From positions 62,001-126,000 of the forward strand of contig JAANOX010000026.1 of NCBI GenBank assembly GCA_020184695.1: a stretch of DNA of 64,000 nt, given 5' to 3'. The DNA comes from Histomonas meleagridis 2922-C6/04-290x. Taxonomy: Eukaryota > Protista > Parabasalia. How positions within the stretch are numbered: the stretch's first letter is position 1; the number at the start of each line of letters is the position of its first letter. The translations under genes were made by a program, and so were the position numbers. The notes under the pieces are model-generated. The model was not told where the DNA came from. It ran no database searches and saw only the letters and a list, made by a program, of their open reading frames with translations. This document shows, piece by piece, positions 4,123 through 30,985 of this stretch.

Positions 4123-5340
4123 TTACATTTGCACAATAAATTTATCTTCTTTGAAGTCATCTGCAAATGGGTCTTCTTCAATATTTGAGATAGATATTCC
4201 TGTTGTGAATGTGTTTGTTGTTTGGTTATTATCATTTTGTTGTTCTGAAATTTCATTTTCAACAATTTCTTCTTTTTTATTTTTAATTCGTATCAATAAT
4301 ATAATTAGTAATGAAATTATAATAATAACAACAACAATAACACAAACAATTATTATGATAATTGCTGTTTTGTTGTCATTTGTTTGTAAAATGTTCGTGT
4401 GAAACATTGTAATGAAATTTGAATAATAATTATAATATGTCGAATACATAATAACTGTGTAATCATAATAAATAAATTCTGTTTCGATATAAGAAAATGT
4501 TGAATTAATTATGGATAATGAAAGTGATCTTGTTTGCGTTTCAGAATAAGTAAATGAATTTGTAATTGTCAATGTATATGTTAATGTATATGAAAATGAA
4601 AATGTTAAATCACTTTGATATGATCCAGTGAATGTATTACTTCGACTGAATGTGTGTGATGAAGAAAATGAAATTGTTGCAATCGGGCTGCAGTTTCCTT
4701 CTGTGTTGTCTTTGTCAACACCTAAATTTCCAAATTTACTTCCTGCATATGTTGGATATGTGATAACACTTGCTGTAACATTATAAAATGCATTTTCTCC
4801 AATACTTGGTTCTGTATATCCATAATAATAAATGCATTCAAGTGAATTACAATTACCAAATGCTGATTCTCTAATTTCTCTTATTCCAGACCCAAGTGTT
4901 AATATTCTTAAATTAGAACACAATGAAAATGCTCCACCACCAATTGAAGTGACTGAATTTGGAATTGTAATGATGTCGATTGATAAACACAATGAAAATG
5001 CTGAACCACCAATTGTTGTAACATTTCCGCCAAATATAATCCTTTCTAAATTAGAACATGACGAAAACACATAACCACCAATATCTGATATAGAATTACC
5101 AAAATTAACTGAAATAACTAATGGCCATTCTGAAAAATGCACTACTCGGAATCGAATAAATTCCTTCACTAATGTTTATAAATTTCGTGATGTCTTTATA
5201 TTGATCAATTTGTTCAAAATCATTTAAATTTGTTATTATTAATGTTGAATTATTATCATATAATATTTGAAAGGAATTTATGAAAAATATAACAAAAATT
5301 AAAACGTTTTTATGTTTTTTCTTTTCGCATGTTTTCAATT
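4123..5340 (-). pseudogene. BspA-like (TpLRR/LRR_5) surface protein, copy 1, frameshifted near the 5' end
   Basis: Repeats xIGxxAFxxCxxLxxIxIPNSVT, Ser/Thr stalk, TM helix and acidic tail EEDPFADDFKED. Has one extra A (5 vs 4) at ~5132-5136 relative to copy 2, splitting ORFs 5105-5353 and 4123-5169. Confidence 0.8.
4379..5340. repeat. Segmental direct duplication, copy A (962 bp)
   Basis: Matches 8675-9635 base for base by eye, apart from a 1-bp A-run difference. Confidence 0.95.
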
Positions 5341-5349
5341 CGTAATTGG

Positions 5350-5925
5350 TCAAAAAAAATTCTGAAGAAAAAGTGGTTTTTTCTGAAAAATATTGACATA
5401 AACCACTAATATCATTGAAAAAACGGCGGTTAAACGAGCAAAAGCATTGAATTTAAGTGGTCGGTCTTTTTTATCGTTTTGCATCAATGAAAAACAAAGA
5501 AATTTACTCTGGGTCAAAGATAGATTCTCATAATATCTTTTCATGGCTTGCTTTGATGTATTATCTTCAGTCAGCATACTGGCTATAAAGGATTTATTTT
5601 GGGTAATTGTAAAGTATGATTCTGATAATTTTAATTTGTCATTAAATATTTGAAGCACAACTAATGTGTTCTCTGTAACAACCAAGGAATCTGGAAATAA
5701 ACTGGTTTTAAAGAAAATAGAATTCTTGTTAAATATATCAAAATTCTGGTGATGAATTTCAACGAATGGATCTTCTGCACTGCGCCCATGCGCAAGTCCT
5801 TCTTTGCAAAGGCTCTTTTTCATATTTGATATTTTTATAGTCGTAAGGAATGGGCTTTCTGGTATAATACTGTTACTAAATTGCTTTGTAATGGACGAAA
5901 CGAGCAGCAAATGAAGAATTCTCAT
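5350..5925 (-). CDS. Hypothetical protein with N-terminal signal-like and C-terminal hydrophobic segment (possibly truncated at the duplication breakpoint)
   Basis: ATG ORF of 191 aa starting MRILHLLLVSS; stop lies 10 bp from the duplication edge at 5340. Confidence 0.5.
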   Translation of the reverse strand: MRILHLLLVSSITKQFSNSIIPESPFLTTIKISNMKKSLCKEGLAHGRSAEDPFVEIHHQNFDIFNKNSIFFKTSLFPDSLVVTENTLVVLQIFNDKLKLSESYFTITQNKSFIASMLTEDNTSKQAMKRYYENLSLTQSKFLCFSLMQNDKKDRPLKFNAFARLTAVFSMILVVYVNIFQKKPLFLQNFF

Positions 5926-8445: not shown

Positions 8446-8674
8446 TTATAGCCAATTGTCTTCATCTTCTTTAACAATATCTTCAACTAAAGTATTTACT
8501 TCCTCCATTTGTTTTGTACTTGATGTAGTTGTATCCTTAAATTGTAATTTCGATGTCGATTTTACTTTTTTGTTATTACTTTTTATATTAAGAATATAAC
8601 AATTCCAACAATTATTAACACAAATGCAATTGCCCCGCAAATAATTCCAATCATTGCATTAGTTGTAAGTCCAT
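8446..8674 (-). pseudogene. Orphan TM + cytoplasmic tail of a surface protein (…MIGIICGAIAFVLIIVGIVIFLI… EDEDNWL)
   Basis: TM helix read in the frame adjacent to ORF 8446-8640; broken by a stop/frameshift; abuts duplication copy B. Confidence 0.65.
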
Positions 8675-9642
8675 TTTGTTTGTAAAATGTTCGTGTGAAA
8701 CATTGTAATGAAATTTGAATAATAATTATAATATGTCGAATACATAATAACTGTGTAATCATAATAAATAAATTCTGTTTCGATATAAGAAAATGTTGAA
8801 TTAATTATGGATAATGAAAGTGATCTTGTTTGCGTTTCAGAATAAGTAAATGAATTTGTAATTGTCAATGTATATGTTAATGTATATGAAAATGAAAATG
8901 TTAAATCACTTTGATATGATCCAGTGAATGTATTACTTCGACTGAATGTGTGTGATGAAGAAAATGAAATTGTTGCAATCGGGCTGCAGTTTCCTTCTGT
9001 GTTGTCTTTGTCAACACCTAAATTTCCAAATTTACTTCCTGCATATGTTGGATATGTGATAACACTTGCTGTAACATTATAAAATGCATTTTCTCCAATA
9101 CTTGGTTCTGTATATCCATAATAATAAATGCATTCAAGTGAATTACAATTACCAAATGCTGATTCTCTAATTTCTCTTATTCCAGACCCAAGTGTTAATA
9201 TTCTTAAATTAGAACACAATGAAAATGCTCCACCACCAATTGAAGTGACTGAATTTGGAATTGTAATGATGTCGATTGATAAACACAATGAAAATGCTGA
9301 ACCACCAATTGTTGTAACATTTCCGCCAAATATAATCCTTTCTAAATTAGAACATGACGAAAACACATAACCACCAATATCTGATATAGAATTACCAAAA
9401 TTAACTGAAATAACTAATGGCCATTCTGAAAATGCACTACTCGGAATCGAATAAATTCCTTCACTAATGTTTATAAATTTCGTGATGTCTTTATATTGAT
9501 CAATTTGTTCAAAATCATTTAAATTTGTTATTATTAATGTTGAATTATTATCATATAATATTTGAAAGGAATTTATGAAAAATATAACAAAAATTAAAAC
9601 GTTTTTATGTTTTTTCTTTTCGCATGTTTTCAATTTGTTCAT
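8659..9642 (-). pseudogene. BspA-like surface protein, copy 2, lacking its own TM/tail
   Basis: Same LRR and stalk as copy 1 but ends …LQTKWTYN* right after the breakpoint. Start codon uncertain; nearest in-frame ATG is 9642. Confidence 0.7.
8675..9635. repeat. Segmental direct duplication, copy B (961 bp)
   Basis: Matches 4379-5340; flanks differ on both sides. Confidence 0.95.
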
Positions 9643-11257
9643 TAAAAGTTTAATTTCAAAAAATAATAAAAATCCCAAAATAAAAATGTTATGCATCAGA
9701 ACTTGAATAACTTTAATGAATTTGAACATTTTCTTTATGAAAATATTATTCATTGAAAATGCTAAGTGTTCTTTTAATGTAAAATGATTAAGTACAAAAG
9801 AAAAGAATTTGAAATAATGTTTAACATATGAAATTGGTAATTCTAATAAAGGGAAATGCCAATGATATTTTTCTGCACTGATGTTAAATGTATAGGTTTG
9901 ATTATCCTTTAGAATAATAAAATTTGTTACTTTAATGGATACATTCGCTTTTTTTCGTGGGATGAAGATGTAAAGTATATGTCCTCTTTGGATTTCGAAG
10001 TAAGGCAAGTGTAATGTTTGAAAGTTTGAGGAGTAGATAATTGATCATCAAAAATCTTTAAACCTGAATTTTGTGGAGAGATTTGTAACGAGCAAAAGAA
10101 ATGCATGGGGAAAGCCAAGAAGAAATAACACATTCGTGAGAAAACTTGAGAAACTTATTGATAAATCAGTCAAAAACGATACAGAGAGCTTCAACCGCTT
10201 CGCTTTTTAGTTATTTCATTGGTTAAACTTTTGCTGATGCATGTTTTATAGTTTTTGCGATCGGAAGATGTTCACAAAGCTGAAACTCAATATTTTCTTA
10301 TAAAAAGTGACAGAAGGTTCCATAATTAAATTGTATTAAAATACTGTTAAAAAACAAAAGAAAGAAGAAGACATCGTTCGCAACCAAGAAAACACGATGA
10401 ATAAAAACATACAAAAAGTTTATTTCAATACAATTAACAGATCACACTGAATTTTGAATGCAGCATTTCTCCAAACAACGGTTTGATTTTAACCAATATT
10501 GATCGTTCGAAACCGTAGCACTTTTGAAAAAGTGTGTAATGATTCCAAAAAATATGGCATTTCTTATTTCCTTTGAATTATTTCGTCAATGATTCGCCTC
10601 AGAAATTGAGAGAAACCACCAAAAAACATGATCGTACAGTTATTGAAAAATTGGACTTCGAACTGAATGTAAAGTAAAGAAAATTGAATTATTCATCAAA
10701 AAACCAAATAAGAAATTATAGTTAAAACTTACAAGCTACAATCAACTTCCTGAAATTCCAATGCCCCTTGAAAATCCAGAAGAAAATTGTGTCAGCACAA
10801 AAATATGCACAGAAAACAAAAAAACATTAAATATTTTGTGTTATGTAGCAGTTGCAACCATTTTGATAATACCCTTTAGGGAGAAATTTCATTTTGCATT
10901 AGTTCGTTCTTAACACAGCAAATCTACATTGTGTTTTTATATATAAAAATATATTAAACATATATTGAAGAACAAATAATTTTATTTTGAAATAGAATTG
11001 TAACCTTGTTATTATTTTGGCATTTTTACGATGTCACGCAAAATCTTCAACTGTAGGTAACTATCATATTCAAAATTACTTACATTTTTTACTCAGACAT
11101 TGATATAAAATGAAATTAAAAATCATGATTCCATGGAACATTAATTATGTAATTGAGTTCAAACAAATGCTGATCTAAACTTTTTATGGATGGATACATC
11201 GAATAATTTTGAAATTTTAATATCAGAAATAAACGCTTTCTATACTTTATTCAAACA

Positions 11258-13324
11258 TTACATCCATTGATCATCATCTTCTTTTGCCATTTCTCCTAAT
11301 GTTTGTATCATTTCATATTGCTGTTCTTTTTCTAAATTGGAACTTAACGAATCACTAAACATTCCATTAAGTTCCGAATATGATTTATCTTTTTTACTAA
11401 TTCTAAATAACCAAACAATAACACCAATGATAATTAACACTAAAGCTATAGATCCACATATAATCCCAATAAGAGATACACTGTTTAAAACAGGTTCATC
11501 AATAATACGATATAAAGATTGAAATACAAATGTATAATAATCTGAATAAAAACTAATGATTGTAGTCATGTGAATAATTGAATATTCATAAAATATTAAT
11601 GTCGAATCGGATAAATACTGAGTGCGGAAAATTTGGGTGAATGAACTGATGTCAGATGAATATATTGTCAGAATAAACGAAAAACTGAGTGACGCACCAA
11701 ATGGAAATGAAGAAGTGAAAGAATTGGACTCTGAAAACGAATTAGAATTTGTAAATGAATTCGACTTCGTAAATGTATTTGATTGCGAAAATGTGTTGGA
11801 CTGTGTAAACGTGTTTGACTCTGAAAATGAATTTGATTGAGTAAGTGTATTCGACTGTGAATATGTATTCGATTGGGAAAATGTATTCGTAGAGAAATTT
11901 AGTCGAACTGTAGTGATATTTCCTGTGATATTTTTATTATCTGTTGGAGCAACATGAAGATACATTTGATCCACAACATCATGAGTTGTAAATTTAATAG
12001 TATTATCATAAGTTATATTTGTTAAATCATTGAACTCACAATTAGCATTAGCGCTAAATGTATAATTATAATGCAATTCCTTTTGTAACGTTAACAACAA
12101 CTTCTGACTCATTGATGCTTTGGCCTGTTCTATTTTATGCAACAACTTTAAATGTATATTGTGTACCAACATTTGCGTCAATTGTTATTAAATAATTTGC
12201 TTGATCTATTACTATGTCATTAATTTCTGGTTGCGATGTGTCAGGCAAATTTAGATAATGATCTTCAAACTCAGTTTCATTAGTTTTTTGCTTAAGATAA
12301 AATATAGTGTTGGCAAGGATTTTTCGTTCAAAAGATGTTGCCGAACCAGTGTGACCTGTTTGAACCATTGCTGTGTTTCCAAATGTGGTAAGATAGAAAT
12401 TATCTGTTTCATTGCAGTTGGTTATATTATATTCGGGGGTACTAGCAAATGAAAACCAAATATCACCATGAGCTTTATGATGCAAAGTGTGAGAAAAATT
12501 AATTGACTCATCTTCTTCTCCTATATTAATGAGGTTCCATGGGTACATTAATAGTAATCCTTGCTTGTGAACTTCTATTTTGTCAGACTGTATGTAATTG
12601 AAATAATCTTTATCATGTTCTTTAACTGTAACATTCGAATAGCAACTATACCTTCGGCATTACCTTTATCATCTTCAAAACCAGAGGTGATTGAATCATG
12701 TCCAGTAATAAAGCCATATCCTTTTTTGATGTAATCACTGATAACTCCTTCTGCTGTTTCTGTTTTGATTGAGTAGCAGTCACTATAATCCCAAAATCCA
12801 GAAGCAGTGACATCATAATGGTACACCATGGTTTGATTGTACTTTTCCAACTCTTTTCCGAAATCATCTATAGATTTGAGTGTTACATTAATAATTTGTT
12901 CACCATTAGAATCAGCACAAGCATCGTAATTATCGTTTTCAATAAAGCCACCTTCCATCCAAACTTTTAAAGAAGCTGATTTGGGATAACTTGATATAGG
13001 ACCAGACGTGAAGCTCGTATATACTTCATCATTTGTTAAAAAAGGCTCGCATTCATCAATGTTAATCAAAGCTGTACCATTGATACTATTTGATTAATTA
13101 ATATTTAAAACATTTATAGTAGTTTCTAATTTGTGCGTGCTAACTGGTTCCCAGCCGCTTTCTGTTTCCAAAAATATTTAATAATAATCAGTTTGATTTT
13201 TTTCTTGATAATTAATTGTCCTATTGAGATATACTCCACCAGCCCCATTTGCATATGTTGCATTGTATTTTGCATTGAGTATTAGTTCTTTGGAAAATAT
13301 GAAGAAATAAATGAAAATAAACAT
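11258..13324 (-). pseudogene. Disrupted type-I surface protein with bacterial-like ectodomain (PKSASLKVWMEGG…GHD…YPW…NFYLTT.GNTAMVQTGH…KILANTIFYLKQ), Ser/Thr stalk, TM and EDDDQWM tail
   Basis: ATG at 13324 (MFIFIYFFIFS). In-frame TAA at 13178-13180, 13094-13096 and 12135-12137, plus frameshifts near 12620 and 12080, join ORFs 12575-13069, 12135-12548 and 11258-12181. Confidence 0.75.
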
Positions 13325-22418: not shown

Positions 22419-23615
22419 TTATATGAATTCGGATGGAACAAGAAGAGGATGGTCAACATCTGGATCTTCCACATTGCCATGAGTAGGTCTCCTGATTCTC
22501 TTGTATATCAAATAAGCGAAAATAGCGAGAAGAACAATGATTAAAATGATAACAACAGCCAAAACGCCGTTCTGTGCCTTCGTGTCGCCGCCTGACGATG
22601 AGCTTGCAGGCGACTGCGATGGCGTGGCTTCGGGCGATTCGGAAGTTGCCTCAGATATAGCCTCAGATGTGATATCTGACGTTTTTTCCGATTCCATTTC
22701 TTCTGATGATGCTTCAGAAGCTTTTTCTGATGAACTTTCTGCTCCTGTAGGCGCTTCTGATGATGCTCCTGTATGTGCTTCTGATGAACTTTCTGCTCCT
22801 GTATGTGCTTCTGTTGAACTTTCTGCTCCTGTATGTGCTTCTGATGAACTTTCTGCTCCTGTATGTGCTTCTGTTGAACTTTCTGCTCCTGTATGTGCTT
22901 CTGATGAACTTTCTGCTCCTGTATGTGCTTCTGATGAACTTTCTGCTCCTGTATGTGCTTCTGATGAACTTTCTGCTCCTGTATGTGCTTCTGTTGAACT
23001 TTCTGCTCCTGTATGTGCTTCTGTTGAACTTTCTGCTCCTGTATGTGCTTCTGATGAACTTTCTGCTCCTGTATGTGCTTCTGTTGAACTTTCTGCTCCT
23101 GTATGTGCTTCTGTTGAACTTTCTGCTCCTGTATGTGCTTCTGTTGAACTTTCTGCTCCTGTATGTGCTTCTGATGAACTTTCTGCTCCTGTATGTGCTT
23201 CTGTTGAACTTTCTGCTCCTGTATGTGCTTCTGATGAACTTTCTGCTCCTGTATGTGCTTCTGTTGAACTTTCTGCTCCTGTATGTGCTTCTGTTGAACT
23301 TTCTGCTCCTGTATGTGCTTCTGTTGAACTTTCTGCTCCTGTATGTGCTTCTGATGAACTTTCTGCTCCTGTATGTGCTTCTGTTGAACTTTCTGCTCCT
23401 GTATGTGCTTCTGATGAACTTTCTGCTCCTGTATGTGCTTCTGTTGAACTTTCTGCTCCTGTATGTGCTTCTGATGAGGTTTCTAGAATTTTAAATAATT
23501 TTATATTTGTAATTTTTTTGGATTCTTTTTTAAGCAAACTCTCTTCTATGCTTTTGCATGAGAGTTGCACCAAAGGTTTTGCCTTGATTTTGAAAAAAAG
23601 TAAGATTAATAGCAT
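22419..23615 (-). CDS. Type-I membrane mucin-like protein with 10-aa tandem repeats (AHTGAESS[S/T]E)
   Basis: Signal-like MLLILLFF, about 24 repeats, TM VLAVVIILIIVLLAIFAYLIY, short tail. Confidence 0.88.
   Translation of the reverse strand: MLLILLFFKIKAKPLVQLSCKSIEESLLKKESKKITNIKLFKILETSSEAHTGAESSTEAHTGAESSSEAHTGAESSTEAHTGAESSSEAHTGAESSTEAHTGAESSTEAHTGAESSTEAHTGAESSSEAHTGAESSTEAHTGAESSSEAHTGAESSTEAHTGAESSTEAHTGAESSTEAHTGAESSSEAHTGAESSTEAHTGAESSTEAHTGAESSSEAHTGAESSSEAHTGAESSSEAHTGAESSTEAHTGAESSSEAHTGAESSTEAHTGAESSSEAHTGASSEAPTGAESSSEKASEASSEEMESEKTSDITSEAISEATSESPEATPSQSPASSSSGGDTKAQNGVLAVVIILIIVLLAIFAYLIYKRIRRPTHGNVEDPDVDHPLLVPSEFI
22741..23476. repeat. 30-bp coding tandem repeat gtatgtgcttctg(a/t)tgaactttctgctcct, 23 full copies plus partial flanking units
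   Basis: Directly visible; units differ only at one A/T position. Confidence 0.98.
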
Positions 23616-23698
23616 TTTTTAGTTGGAATATATTTGAACTGCTAAGGGTGCCCCAATTAATCGTACGTTAACTTTGCAAAGAACTTTGCATTGTTCAC

Positions 23699-27776: not shown

Positions 27777-28304
27777 TGCTATACATTGTGTTATACAAAA
27801 TACATTTAATGATGCTTTTTCTTTAAGCAACGATATATTGTATTAATATTTTAAAGAATTTTTATTTTGGGCAACTGAATTATTTTTTTTTTATTTCAAA
27901 GATTTTAGTGAAACCTAAAAATAGATAATAAACGTTCTCGTCAACTTTTTGTTTCGTCTTGACTTTTTGAGATATTTATCAATTTTTATGTTATTATCGG
28001 TTCCACTTTTTGAACAAAATTGAGATATCTCAAAAAGTTATTTTTCAGGCAAACCCAAATTTTTTTGTTTGATGGGAAACAACTACAAAAATCGAACAAA
28101 AGCAGAGCTTAGCCAAACATATCCTTTTTTGCTTACAAATTATGTGCAAGATTTAGAATCTCTTGAATAATTTATTTTTAATATGAGTGAAGATATCATT
28201 GCAATGAATTTGATAAATCATTTTTTCAAGCTTGAATTTGGTTCTTAATCAATTAATACCTCATCAATTCTATCACAAATGAATTATATTTTATTTATAG
28301 AGTT

Positions 28305-29777
28305 CTATGGGAATTCGAAGTTATTGTCTTCTTTAAAATCTTTTGCAAATGGATCTTCATCAACATGTGAAATATTTGAAACCACTGAAATATGATCAAT
28401 AATTTCATTATCTTCCTCACTTAAGTTAATTGATTCGTTTTTAATTTTATTTTTTTGCATACGAATTATTATAACTAAAACGAAACAAATTATAACAATA
28501 AATACAACAACACAAATTATAACAATAATTATAATATTCATTTTGTCATTGCCATCGTTATAATTATCGTTGTGATTAACATTTATAAAATACATTGAGT
28601 AATATGTATAATATGTTGAATAATGAACAACACTGTAAACATAAAATATATATTCAGTGAACACGTAAATGTGCGACGAATTAACAAATGACATGAAAAA
28701 CGTATTCGATGCAAATGAATCCTCAATTACAAGCGTCTTAGTAACAGAATGTATAAATGTTAAAGAATTTGTTAATGTTAAATTCGCAATATCACTATCC
28801 GAACTGAATGCACTCGTTTTTGTATATGTGTTACTTTTAGTGTATGTATTAGACTTAGTGTATGTGTTAGATTTAGTGTATGTGTTACTTAGCGTGAATG
28901 TGCTTGTTTCGCTAAATGTTTCTGTCTCTATGTTATCGACGTTGAATGTGAGGCTGTAAGAGTACCCGCTGTGCAGCTCATCAGTTCGATATGTTGCGTT
29001 GAAATATCGGCCATCATCGAAAAATGATAAAATAATATCATTTTCGAGTGTCTGTGGGAAGACAATGATTGAGTAAGTAATTTCAGTATATGTTTCATCG
29101 AATGAATAAGGACAATCCGTGATGCACCAATTCGATAGTACATCTCCAGTTGCCGTGGCAGTGCCTGTTGGTATGTTGAATACCCCATTGTGCCTCAGGC
29201 CACTAAGGTATATCGAAAAATTACGACTAGGTAATTTGGCAAAATGTAATTGTATTAGAAGCTTAGTCATAACATGTGTAAAGTTCAATTTTACTGTGGG
29301 TGATTCTGATGAGCCGGTTCCAACTGCATACATGAAATCGATGTTACTTTGGTTCAATTGAATACTAGTATCTGCTGATATAATTGTTGCTATTTCAGTC
29401 ATCCACGGATAATAGGCAGTAAATGCAACTTCATCTGGAGTATTATAGTATATTTCTGTATAAGCTTTTAGAGGAGTGAATGCTGACCCATATGTGATGT
29501 AAGGAACATTAGCATAGGTTTCAGCTCCTGATGTACACGTTATACCAATTGTATCACCAGGCTCCCAAGTAATGTCAAATGCAAGAAGGATTCCTTCTGT
29601 GGAAAACCAGTCTTCAATTGAACAAGTTATATCTGGTATACCAGGTATCGACGGTTCAAGTTGAAGAAAATTTGAGTTTAACTTTAACGCAGTTCTTGAA
29701 GTCATTTCTGTTGTGTTATTCATAACTCCATTTGCCTTGCTAATTAACAAAGTAATCCCAAAGATAATAAAACTCAT
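28305..29777 (-). CDS. Type-I surface protein with Bacteroidetes fimbrillin-like (Mfa-like) ectodomain
   Basis: Likely start ATG 29777 (MSFIIFGITLL). WEPGDTIGI, NVPY, FTAYYP, DFMYA, VKLNFTHVMTKL, LSGL..NGVFNIPTG, IIVFPQ, LHSGYSY; then Ser/Thr stalk, TM and DEDPFAKDFKED tail. Confidence 0.8.
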   Translation of the reverse strand: MSFIIFGITLLISKANGVMNNTTEMTSRTALKLNSNFLQLEPSIPGIPDITCSIEDWFSTEGILLAFDITWEPGDTIGITCTSGAETYANVPYITYGSAFTPLKAYTEIYYNTPDEVAFTAYYPWMTEIATIISADTSIQLNQSNIDFMYAVGTGSSESPTVKLNFTHVMTKLLIQLHFAKLPSRNFSIYLSGLRHNGVFNIPTGTATATGDVLSNWCITDCPYSFDETYTEITYSIIVFPQTLENDIILSFFDDGRYFNATYRTDELHSGYSYSLTFNVDNIETETFSETSTFTLSNTYTKSNTYTKSNTYTKSNTYTKTSAFSSDSDIANLTLTNSLTFIHSVTKTLVIEDSFASNTFFMSFVNSSHIYVFTEYIFYVYSVVHYSTYYTYYSMYFINVNHNDNYNDGNDKMNIIIIVIICVVVFIVIICFVLVIIIRMQKNKIKNESINLSEEDNEIIDHISVVSNISHVDEDPFAKDFKEDNNFEFP

Positions 29778-29872
29778 GGAACATTTTTGGGGCACTCCGG
29801 TAAAAACGGTTTCGTGATTAATAAAGTCCGTTTGAATGCCATTGACCAAATTTTAACGGTTTTAGGAACAAA

Positions 29873-30067
29873 ATGTCAACAACAACTTCATCCAAAACCC
29901 CAGAATCTGACGCCAACATACAACAAGAACACAATCAACGCGAACAAGATTGGAAAGACTTTGAAATTCCGGAGATTCCTCCAATGGATGATTCAACAAT
30001 TGAAGCAACATTATCGACCAAATATGATTTGAACACATTATTCCAAAAGATGCGATCAATTAACTAA
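29873..30067 (+). CDS. Small acidic protein (64 aa), possible real small gene
   Basis: ATG in an aaaATG context, divergent from the 29777 gene, protein-like composition. Confidence 0.4.
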   Translation: MSTTTSSKTPESDANIQQEHNQREQDWKDFEIPEIPPMDDSTIEATLSTKYDLNTLFQKMRSIN

Positions 30068-30272
30068 AAATTATTATTAATATGGTTAGGTTGTACTTTT
30101 TATGGAAAACTATTTTTTTTTAGAATAAATGATTACGATAACTTTTGCCAAATATCGAACTTCTTAATTTTAAATGTGTATCACCTCTGCTAATATCTGA
30201 CCTGAGTCAAAACAAAATAACAAATATATTATTCTTCATTTGAGTGTCTGATATGTAAAAAAAACAAAAAAC

Positions 30273-30344: not shown

Positions 30345-30538
30345 TTTCATTTATTTAAAATTATTATATATTAAATGCATCAAAATTATACCTCAAGAAA
30401 TACCTTATATAAGCTCAAAATAAAAGCCACAAAAAATTTATTTGTACGCAACCCAATCTAAAGGCTCTTTGTATTTTTTCAAAAAAATAAAACAAAAAAA
30501 CTGATTTTAATAAAAAAAAATGTGTCACAAATTTGTGC

Positions 30539-30985
30539 CTATATGTTTTGTTCCAATATTTTTGTTATAATATCTCTATATTTTTCTAGAATAAAAAAAT
30601 ATGCTCTATTTCCAATTTTTGAAGAAATGACTAATTCAATAAAACAGTTGTTAAACCCTGGTATCTCAAGAATTTTGTATGATTTTATTTCGTTGTAGAA
30701 TATCCTATCCTGAAATTTTTGGGAATAAAGAAATATAGCATCTGTTTCGAAAAAAAGTTCTGCTTCATTTCCTTCCCAATCACGAACTTTTAGTGATGAC
30801 TTGGGAAGAGTTTCTGCTTGAGTTTTATCACCTTCGTAAATTGCATAAAGTGGGCCCATTTCAATAATTTTTTTATGATTTTCTTGATTTTCTCGTAGAT
30901 ACCTTTGAATTGATTTAGGCGATGAAAAATTGCTGATTTCAACTTTGTTACTACTTCCTGCACAGCAACCACAAAATGAACCCAT
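30539..30985 (-). CDS. Small protein with N-terminal acylation motif (MGSFCGCC)
   Basis: Gly2 plus Cys cluster typical of myristoylation/palmitoylation; beta-rich C-terminal part. Confidence 0.65.
   Translation of the reverse strand: MGSFCGCCAGSSNKVEISNFSSPKSIQRYLRENQENHKKIIEMGPLYAIYEGDKTQAETLPKSSLKVRDWEGNEAELFFETDAIFLYSQKFQDRIFYNEIKSYKILEIPGFNNCFIELVISSKIGNRAYFFILEKYRDIITKILEQNI

Follow-up and report, generated by a model that had tools for sequence, protein, structure and literature searches.

The gene considered here lies at 28305-29777 on the reverse strand of a 64,000-nucleotide stretch of Histomonas meleagridis 2922-C6/04-290x DNA (contig JAANOX010000026.1, positions 62,001 to 126,000, hereafter the window), and it encodes a protein of 490 residues in which a Bacteroidetes-type Mfa_like_1 domain, which has the type V pilin fold, is carried by a protist surface-protein chassis of signal peptide, repeat stalk, aromatic region, transmembrane (TM) helix and cytoplasmic tail. 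The reading frame runs uninterrupted from an ATG at 29777 to a stop at 28305-28307 and needs no spliced model; an upstream TTG at 29849 was rejected as the start codon, being only the mechanical start of the open reading frame (ORF). The genes around it are eukaryotic (Myb, coiled-coil, kinesin, importin-beta-like, SHMT, AAA ATPase and Ank/DUF3447), and the locus is contained in both deposited H. meleagridis assemblies. In the public record GCA_020186115.1 (contig WSYJ01000166.1), a 490-residue gene is called at the same place with no Pfam match recorded. WSYJ00000000 is the H. meleagridis genome of Palmieri et al. 2021 (PMC8529796), whose supplementary table of membrane proteins lists 'g8743.t1 fimbrillin family protein, 490 aa' beside the kinesin g8744, and whose main text makes no mention of fimbrillin, Mfa or lateral transfer. 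No paper in the literature searched links fimbrillin or Mfa domains to Histomonas or any trichomonad. The ESM Atlas includes the protein sequence; the exact sequence is not in a 15-billion-protein table, and no self match was returned by our exhaustive phmmer search.

The presence of an Mfa-like domain on a protist chassis is confirmed, and it is far beyond chance, given that Pfam Mfa_like_1 (PF13149) scored 124.1 bits on residues 68-289, where 27 would suffice (E 1.2e-35), and was aligned over positions 5-239 of its 246. The series of motifs from which a first-pass annotation of this DNA had recognised a fimbrillin is present in full and in the claimed order, namely WEPGDTIGI, NVPY, FTAYYP, DFMYA, VKLNFTH, LSGLRHNGVFNIPTG, IVFPQ and LHSGYSY. 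A sequence search of the PDB retrieved BACOVA_04980 (3ufi, E 1.7e-14) as well as BACUNI_00621 (4k4k), and an AlphaFold2 model of residues 40-295, built from a 68-row alignment, reached a predicted local distance difference test score (pLDDT) of 88.7 and a predicted template modelling score of 0.85, with both the N- and the C-terminal part of the two-beta-sandwich (transthyretin-like) pilin fold present. The top Foldseek matches of this model were Bacteroides 'putative cell adhesion' or fimbrial proteins, namely 3ufi (TM-score 0.73, E 6e-15), 4k4k, 3t2l and 3sy6, with Mfa4, Mfa2, Mfa3 and FimA of P. gingivalis further down the list; VIA-align gave a Z of 21.5 for 3ufi (root-mean-square deviation 3.0 over 231 residues), 19.1 for 4k4k and 7-11 for the P. 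gingivalis pilins. The nearest structure clusters in the ESM Atlas were all Bacteroidota Mfa_like_1 families, several of which are bacterial fusions of Mfa_like_1 to CBM, Glug, endonuclease or Fib_succ_major domains. The NCBIfam profiles yielded nothing specific for the protein, and a Pfam search found no leucine-rich repeat (LRR) match in it, which sets it apart from BspA-like LRR_5 (PF13306) proteins. As such, the profile and structure comparisons that the first-pass annotation had proposed both came out in its favour and support the assignment of the domain to Pfam Mfa_like_1 and to the FimA-Mfa pilin-fold superfamily.

The remainder of the protein is built as that annotation had read it. 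The hydrophobic, eukaryotic signal-like N-terminus is MSFIIFGITLLISKANG, and the (SNTYTK)n stalk consists of four exact-register hexapeptides encoded by four 18-nt repeats (Tandem Repeats Finder, TRF, period 18, 4.1 copies, 28817-28890), which align with SNTFTQ-type repeats of other H. meleagridis proteins and of a metagenomic relative, P0034, described below. The aromatic region is ~75 residues long and abounds in F, Y, S, T and V. Residues 288-408 have no confident fold in the full-length AlphaFold model, in which the stalk and the aromatic region have a pLDDT below 50, and TMHMM places two further TM segments in the aromatic region (residues 331-404) according to the table of the genome paper (PMC8529796). 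The TM helix is, in contrast to the stalk, modelled with a pLDDT of 79-93 (helix at residues 410-447), and the 53-residue tail finishes in EDPFAKDFKEDNNFEFP, which contains the predicted DPF motif. In animals, DP[FW] motifs bind adaptor appendage domains, and this is no more than a lead for the tail. The stretch of ~39 nt at 28327-28365 that encodes HVDEDPFAKDFKED recurs, with a single mismatch, in many other contigs and has a DNA depth of about 18x that of the flanks. The tail is thus conserved at the nucleotide level across a large gene family, and this suggests either gene conversion or strong selection.

The stalk and anchor are a real, reused module of the parasite. The C-terminal ~210 residues share 36-38% identity over 170-217 residues with the C-termini of the H. 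meleagridis proteins P0002, P0004 and P0006, of which P0004 has a BspA-type LRR_5 head, and P0002 and P0006 have 'bacterial Ig-like' heads with no Pfam match. The order that defines the module, hexapeptide S/T-N-T-F/Y-T-x repeats followed by the aromatic region, a single TM helix and an acidic EDPFAxDF tail, is found in the 490-residue protein. The window itself contains further genes of this type (Table 1). One of them, the BspA-LRR gene at 4123-5169(-), lies 23 kb from the fimbrillin-like gene and has the tail EEDPFADDFKED, and it is this gene, together with the identity to the other H. meleagridis C-termini, that bears out the notion of a protist surface-protein chassis. Its upstream copy at 8659-10008(-) is identical to it in LRR head, stalk and aromatic region and ends in ...QTKWTYN and a stop, and could be a truncated product, possibly a secreted one, or else a dead duplicate. 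No further Mfa-like ORFs were found in the window or in the ~65 kb around three other chassis genes, and a feature search of the ESM Atlas with the chassis gave mucin- and syndecan-like leads only, all of them below threshold.

Table 1. Features of the fimbrillin-like gene and of the other chassis-type genes in the window (aa, residues of the encoded protein; AF2, AlphaFold2; CDS, coding sequence).
Feature	Position	Strand	Basis or remark
Complete CDS, 490 aa + stop	28305-29777	-	ORF list; g8743 of the H. meleagridis genome paper
Eukaryotic-type signal peptide, aa 1-17, without lipobox Cys	29727-29777	-	Sequence MSFIIFGITLLISKANG; modelled helix 2-15
Linker, first beta-strand (aa 49-54) and loop	29598-29726	-	Equivalent of the bacterial 'anchor strand'; Leu replaces the bacterial Arg
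Mfa_like_1 (type V pilin-fold) domain, aa 68-289	28911-29576	-	Pfam, PDB sequence search, AF2, structure matches
Stalk, aa 290-330: Ser/Thr-rich SNTYTK x4 and linker	28788-28910	-	TRF; pLDDT <50
Conserved aromatic (F/Y)-rich membrane-proximal region, aa 331-404	28566-28787	-	Kept in P0002, P0004, P0006, P0034 and window gene 4123-5169
Transmembrane helix, aa 413-437	28467-28541	-	AF2 helix; TMHMM 415-437 in the genome paper
Cytoplasmic tail, aa 438-490, ending in the EDPFAKDFKED motif (~28326-28367)	28308-28466	-	Shared with P0004, P0034 and window gene 4123-5169
LRR_5 (BspA-type) head on stalk, aromatic region and TM, with EDPFADDFKED tail	4123-5169	-	phmmer of chassis E 1.1e-26; Pfam LRR_5 E 3e-26
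Near-duplicate BspA-LRR head and stalk, ending before the TM helix	8659-10008	-	Pfam LRR_5; translation
Third chassis-type gene: SNTFTQ stalk, aromatic region, TM, tail class ending DDDQWM	11258-12181	-	phmmer of chassis E 1.3e-14

The physical linkage of the domain to its eukaryotic flanks, for which confirmation at the level of reads had been advised, is borne out by contigs from three studies of one organism that span the junctions; nine runs from these studies contain the stretch. A single contig of a second DNA sample reaches from 28323 to 30255, differing at one position and with a depth equal to that of the flanks, so that the domain is single-copy at at least 95% identity. In a 2023 study, one contig of 2282 nt covers 27876-30152 with nothing in the adjacent intergenic DNA, and the poly-T/poly-A loose ends of neighbouring genes are in keeping with RNA. 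The cDNA-like contigs of a 2013 run cover 28243-29751 only, which is essentially the CDS. These cDNA-like contigs suggest that the gene is transcribed. The strain of the 2023 study differs at four positions, three of which change the protein (V435F, D329Y and N304K) and one of which is synonymous (S273), leaving the amino acids of the pilin domain unchanged. A contig joint of 28366 to 28870 was rejected as a deletion or intron, as its short side is only 21 nt long and it lies between repeated segments, and we ascribe it to a de Bruijn artefact. The RNA-like contig of 2023 also reaches ~430 nt past the stop (27876-28304) and ~375 nt past the ATG (29778-30152). Such flanks are long for untranslated regions of trichomonads, the 2013 contigs ending ~60 nt after the stop, and unannotated small transcripts or antisense RNA may overlap these two intervals.

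To trace the origin of the domain, the ectodomain was searched exhaustively with phmmer in a set of 1.84 billion representatives; 675 matches were obtained at E<=1e-3, of which the best 150 were examined. The highest identity to any bacterial sequence among the 675 was 48%, in a partial match. Far from being eukaryote-wide, which the first-pass annotation had named as the outcome that would speak against its reading, the best matches are Bacteroidales lipoproteins, and 133 of the best 150 have a Bacteroidota-type signal peptide with a lipobox Cys. A locus scan with a six-row alignment over one genome per prokaryotic species (GTDB) gave 64 loci, of which 62 are in Bacteroidales-named or unclassified bins and two in bins labelled Oscillibacter and Butyrivibrio, which are likely mis-binned; the Bacteroidales include Bacteroides, Prevotella, Muribaculaceae, Porphyromonadaceae, Odoribacter, Rikenellaceae and others. 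At the best named locus (L002), in a metagenome-assembled genome (MAG) from chicken caecum, 'Candidatus Bacteroides intestinavium', an Mfa2-type anchor gene is followed by three tandem Mfa_like_1 genes, which makes this a type V pilus operon. Type V pili have been described as unique to Bacteroidia (PMC13655056). Among the remaining loci of the scan, L043-L057 and L060 (~5001-5630 in each) share a best Mfa-like ORF of 306 residues with identical scores and coordinates, although their hosts are species of Parabacteroides, Leyella, Bacteroides, Phocaeicola, Prevotella and Paludibacteraceae; this ORF looks like the cargo of a mobile element spreading among gut Bacteroidales.

Only two sequences among the best 150 matches are not bacterial in style, P0034 and P0031, both of which come from short contigs of 31-38% GC in ENA metagenomes and score above the Pfam Mfa_like_1 threshold. 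P0034 (559 residues) combines the Mfa-like domain with SNTFTQ repeats, the aromatic region, a TM helix and an EDPFAADF tail, at 31% identity over 489 residues, and P0031 has the Mfa-like domain and the first stalk repeats, after which its frame is lost. The 490-residue protein is 31-36% identical to the two, with the core pilin motifs kept. In an unrooted maximum-likelihood tree of 54 rows (LG+C20), the three form one clade, with an ultrafast bootstrap (UFBoot) of 98 and an SH-like approximate likelihood-ratio test (SH-aLRT) value of 93, and in all three the stalk begins no more than ~10 residues after the last strand of the domain; this argues for one capture and one fusion that preceded their divergence. 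A metagenome scan with protist-specific patterns returned two weak loci only. The ectodomain is, as claimed at the outset, richer in GC than the stalk (38.4% against 32.6%, with 26.6% in the aromatic region and 22.9% in the TM helix and tail), and its GC at third codon positions (GC3) differs modestly from that of neighbouring host genes (0.316 against 0.18-0.29). Since this value is near that of host genes and identity to any bacterium is at most 48%, the composition and divergence of the domain point to an old transfer. With Bacteroidales as the named relatives, lipoproteins as 133 of the best 150 matches and the three protist-type sequences in one clade, the proposed lateral transfer from Bacteroidales is supported, and we consider the gene a clear case of gene capture from gut bacteria.

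Type V pilins are lipoproteins in which an N-terminal anchor strand is followed by a loop that is cut at a conserved Arg, and this cleavage releases a C-terminal donor strand for strand exchange, tip pilins having no donor strands (PMC13655056). When 66 bacterial rows of an alignment (A1) were compared with the H. meleagridis protein and P0034, the residue before A-x-D-x-x-W was R in 64 and K in the other two, and L in both protist-type proteins (GILLAFD in H. meleagridis), and no R or K is found in the H. meleagridis protein between the first strand and WEPGD. The segment past the last shared strand has a median length of 25.5 residues in the bacterial rows and contains a Trp in 63 of the 66; in the protist sequences its place is taken by stalk repeats. 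The lipobox Cys present in most bacterial relatives is, as had been noted, absent from the H. meleagridis N-terminus, which therefore has no lipoprotein signal. In addition, no anchor gene of the Mfa2/FimB type and no partner pilin gene was found near 28305-29777, and the chain has no free C-terminal donor strand, as it runs from the stalk into the TM helix. The first strand is kept in the AlphaFold2 model (E10-15 of the domain model). Thus, the 490-residue protein is in the domain family yet fails every test for a working pilus subunit, and the simplest reading of a sequence without lipobox Cys, maturation Arg and C-terminal Trp segment is that of a closed monomeric domain that would be displayed on a stalk instead of being built into a pilus.

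Taken together, we think it probable that this protein is a type I membrane protein of H. meleagridis whose ectodomain is a laterally acquired Bacteroidales Mfa_like_1 domain, bound to the parasite's own anchor and displayed as a monomer with a ligand. In such a scheme, a gene of the Bacteroidales type V pilin family would have been acquired by lateral transfer and would then have lost its lipoprotein signal and Cys, the Arg at which pilins are matured and the C-terminal segment in which the Trp lies, and the remaining two-beta-sandwich domain would have been fused to a parasite signal peptide and to the stalk and anchor module that is also used for BspA-LRR and 'Ig-like' heads. With the first strand staying in place, the domain may be a closed monomer that a stalk, probably glycosylated, lifts clear of the plasma membrane. 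There it could bind a caecal ligand, be it on bacteria that the parasite feeds on or in mucus or epithelium, and the conserved tail might connect the protein with the machinery of endocytosis or phagocytosis. Homology, fold, architecture, the bacterial distribution of the relatives, integration in the genome and coverage by cDNA-like contigs are established by the results above; that the protein is at the surface, is a monomer, binds a ligand and uses its tail in this way is put forward here as prediction. Likewise, a function as an adhesin or receptor is suggested by analogy, namely by the annotation and biology of the bacterial family, by the parallel with BspA-like proteins and by the idea of the genome paper that bacterial-type membrane proteins serve feeding on bacteria (PMC8529796).

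Several points weigh against this interpretation or narrow it. The phylogeny proposed by the first-pass annotation held for the protist-type clade itself, and did not fix the attachment of that clade within the bacterial family, as the tree is unrooted and has long branches and skewed composition; with the best 150 of 675 matches examined, weaker relatives may also occur in other eukaryotes. The RNA nature of runs X3-X7 is a guess in the run table, with which the intergenic gaps and the poly-T/poly-A ends agree. The surfaceome tables searched, some of them incomplete, list 'fimbrin' and not 'fimbrillin'. In addition, the first stalk residues, which might stand in for the C-terminal strand that the bacterial proteins have and this one lacks, are modelled by AlphaFold with a pLDDT <50.

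Other explanations of the locus have to be set against this one. Contamination, or an assembly chimera of a Bacteroidales gene with protist DNA, could be suspected in a gene whose most GC-rich part is the domain and whose relatives are bacterial. However, one and the same ORF encodes the eukaryotic-type signal, the domain and the protist-specific stalk, TM helix and tail, the contig of the second sample spans the same stretch at flank depth, two other studies have the same junctions and both deposited assemblies have the locus; with the best bacterial identity at 48%, GC3 near the host range and the same fusion in two independent metagenome contigs, we regard an artefact of this kind as practically inconceivable. 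That the protein is a working type V pilus subunit which polymerises on the parasite surface by donor-strand exchange would agree with the full two-sandwich pilin fold and the retained first strand, and is nevertheless very improbable given the Leu in the R/K maturation column, the replacement of the C-terminal segment with its near-invariant Trp by the stalk, the missing lipoprotein signal and the missing anchor and partner pilin genes nearby. Moreover, the TM helix anchors the C-terminus and so leaves no free donor strand.

The domain could also have kept a relation to pili of another sort, accepting the donor strands of Bacteroidales pilins and so capturing or capping type V pili for prey capture or attachment to biofilms. 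Like tip pilins, it has no C-terminal donor segment of its own (PMC13655056), H. meleagridis feeds on bacteria, a habit to which the genome paper ties bacterial-type membrane proteins (PMC8529796), and parasite and donor lineage live in the same habitat, a chicken caecum MAG being the source of the best named locus. If true, a eukaryote would have made a receptor for bacterial pili out of a bacterial pilin, and Histomonas could latch onto, cap or ingest piliated caecal bacteria, which would provide a molecular basis for its long-known dependence on bacteria. We nonetheless hold this to be quite unlikely, as the first strand that closes the groove is kept and the loop has no Arg or Lys cleavage site, nor can the model show an open groove. 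Somewhat less unlikely, though still doubtful, is that the gene, though transcribed, is a functionless remnant of an old transfer and drifts neutrally. This would be in line with the absence of 'fimbrillin' from the surfaceome tables searched, with three of the four strain differences being non-synonymous (V435F, D329Y and N304K) and with the truncated chassis gene in the window, which indicates that the family yields dead copies. Against it stand a frame that has stayed open over 490 codons in a genome rich in AT, the retention of core pilin motifs and of a domain with a confident fold at 31-36% identity to two metagenome relatives, the conserved tail motif, and the position of the three amino-acid changes, all of which lie outside a pilin domain that has one synonymous change only.

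The laterally acquired, membrane-anchored domain that we favour can be compared with several known systems. Closest are the Bacteroides Mfa_like_1 'putative cell adhesion proteins' BACOVA_04980 (3ufi) and BACUNI_00621 (4k4k), with a homologous domain of ~25% identity over the structures, the same fold (for 3ufi, Z 21.5 and TM-score 0.73) and the same core motifs, identity to metagenomic relatives reaching at most 48%. Bacterial Mfa_like_1 proteins are lipoproteins of ~300 residues with Cys lipidation, a conserved Thr-Arg-Ala loop and a C-terminal Trp segment, encoded in pilus operons, whereas the H. meleagridis protein has a eukaryotic signal, Leu at the position of the Arg, a repeat stalk, a TM helix, a cytoplasmic tail and eukaryotic neighbours. 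FimA and Mfa1-Mfa4 of P. gingivalis have the same superfamily fold and match more weakly (Z 7-11, identity 6-8%); Arg-gingipains cleave them in maturation, and strand exchange joins them into polymers (PMC13655056), and the H. meleagridis protein is without the features needed for this type of maturation and exchange. The BspA-like LRR proteins of trichomonads, such as TvBspA of T. vaginalis and the 77 TM-bearing BspA proteins of H. meleagridis (PMC8529796; see also PMC2843621 and PMC6701047), are likewise bacterial-type surface domains on a eukaryotic single-pass anchor with a short conserved tail. In H. meleagridis, BspA-LRR proteins have literally the same stalk, TM and tail module, and differ in the head, which is LRR_5 there and pilin-fold here. 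Finally, the 'bacterial Ig-like' membrane protein family HOG02302 (Palmieri et al. 2021), which is specific to H. meleagridis and has been proposed to act in adhesion or in feeding on bacteria (PMC8529796), has hexapeptide stalk, aromatic region and TM helix in common with the fimbrillin-like protein (P0002, P0006 and the window gene at 11258-12181), and has a different head without a Pfam match and, in some members, another class of tail.

Two further observations concern the surroundings of the gene. At 30539-30985(-), where the public record has no gene, an ORF of 148 residues shows a weak PH-like match (PF25343, E 2e-4) and starts with MGSFCGCC, likely a motif for N-terminal acylation; RNA-like contigs extend across it, and a poly-T loose end lies at 30493. 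At 22419-23615(-) and 22537-23622(+), ORFs of 398 and 361 residues overlap almost fully on opposite strands. The former is the called gene, which is mucin/TM-like, and the latter matches Kazal_2 (E 8e-10, with no single stretch passing), probably as a result of Cys-rich low complexity.

The gene, its product and the automatic label 'fimbrillin family protein' are already public. What appears not to have been described is the interpretation, namely that a domain of the type V pilin fold is met for the first time in a eukaryote, where it has lost its assembly features and sits on a shared anchor. The transfer of Bacteroidales-like surface genes into trichomonads is a well-known wider pattern, and because of this and of the public name, the surprise is moderate. 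Nevertheless, a pilin fold that has been described as confined to Bacteroidia would here have been taken up by a eukaryote and re-engineered as a single-pass membrane protein, adding a third type of head, besides BspA-LRR and 'Ig-like', to a modular surface-protein system, and illustrating cleanly, from nature, which pilin parts are dispensable when only the displayed domain is wanted. H. meleagridis is an economically important parasite of poultry for which there is no licensed treatment and whose need for bacteria is unexplained. The fimbrillin-like gene is a concrete candidate for the contact of this parasite with bacteria or with the host mucosa.

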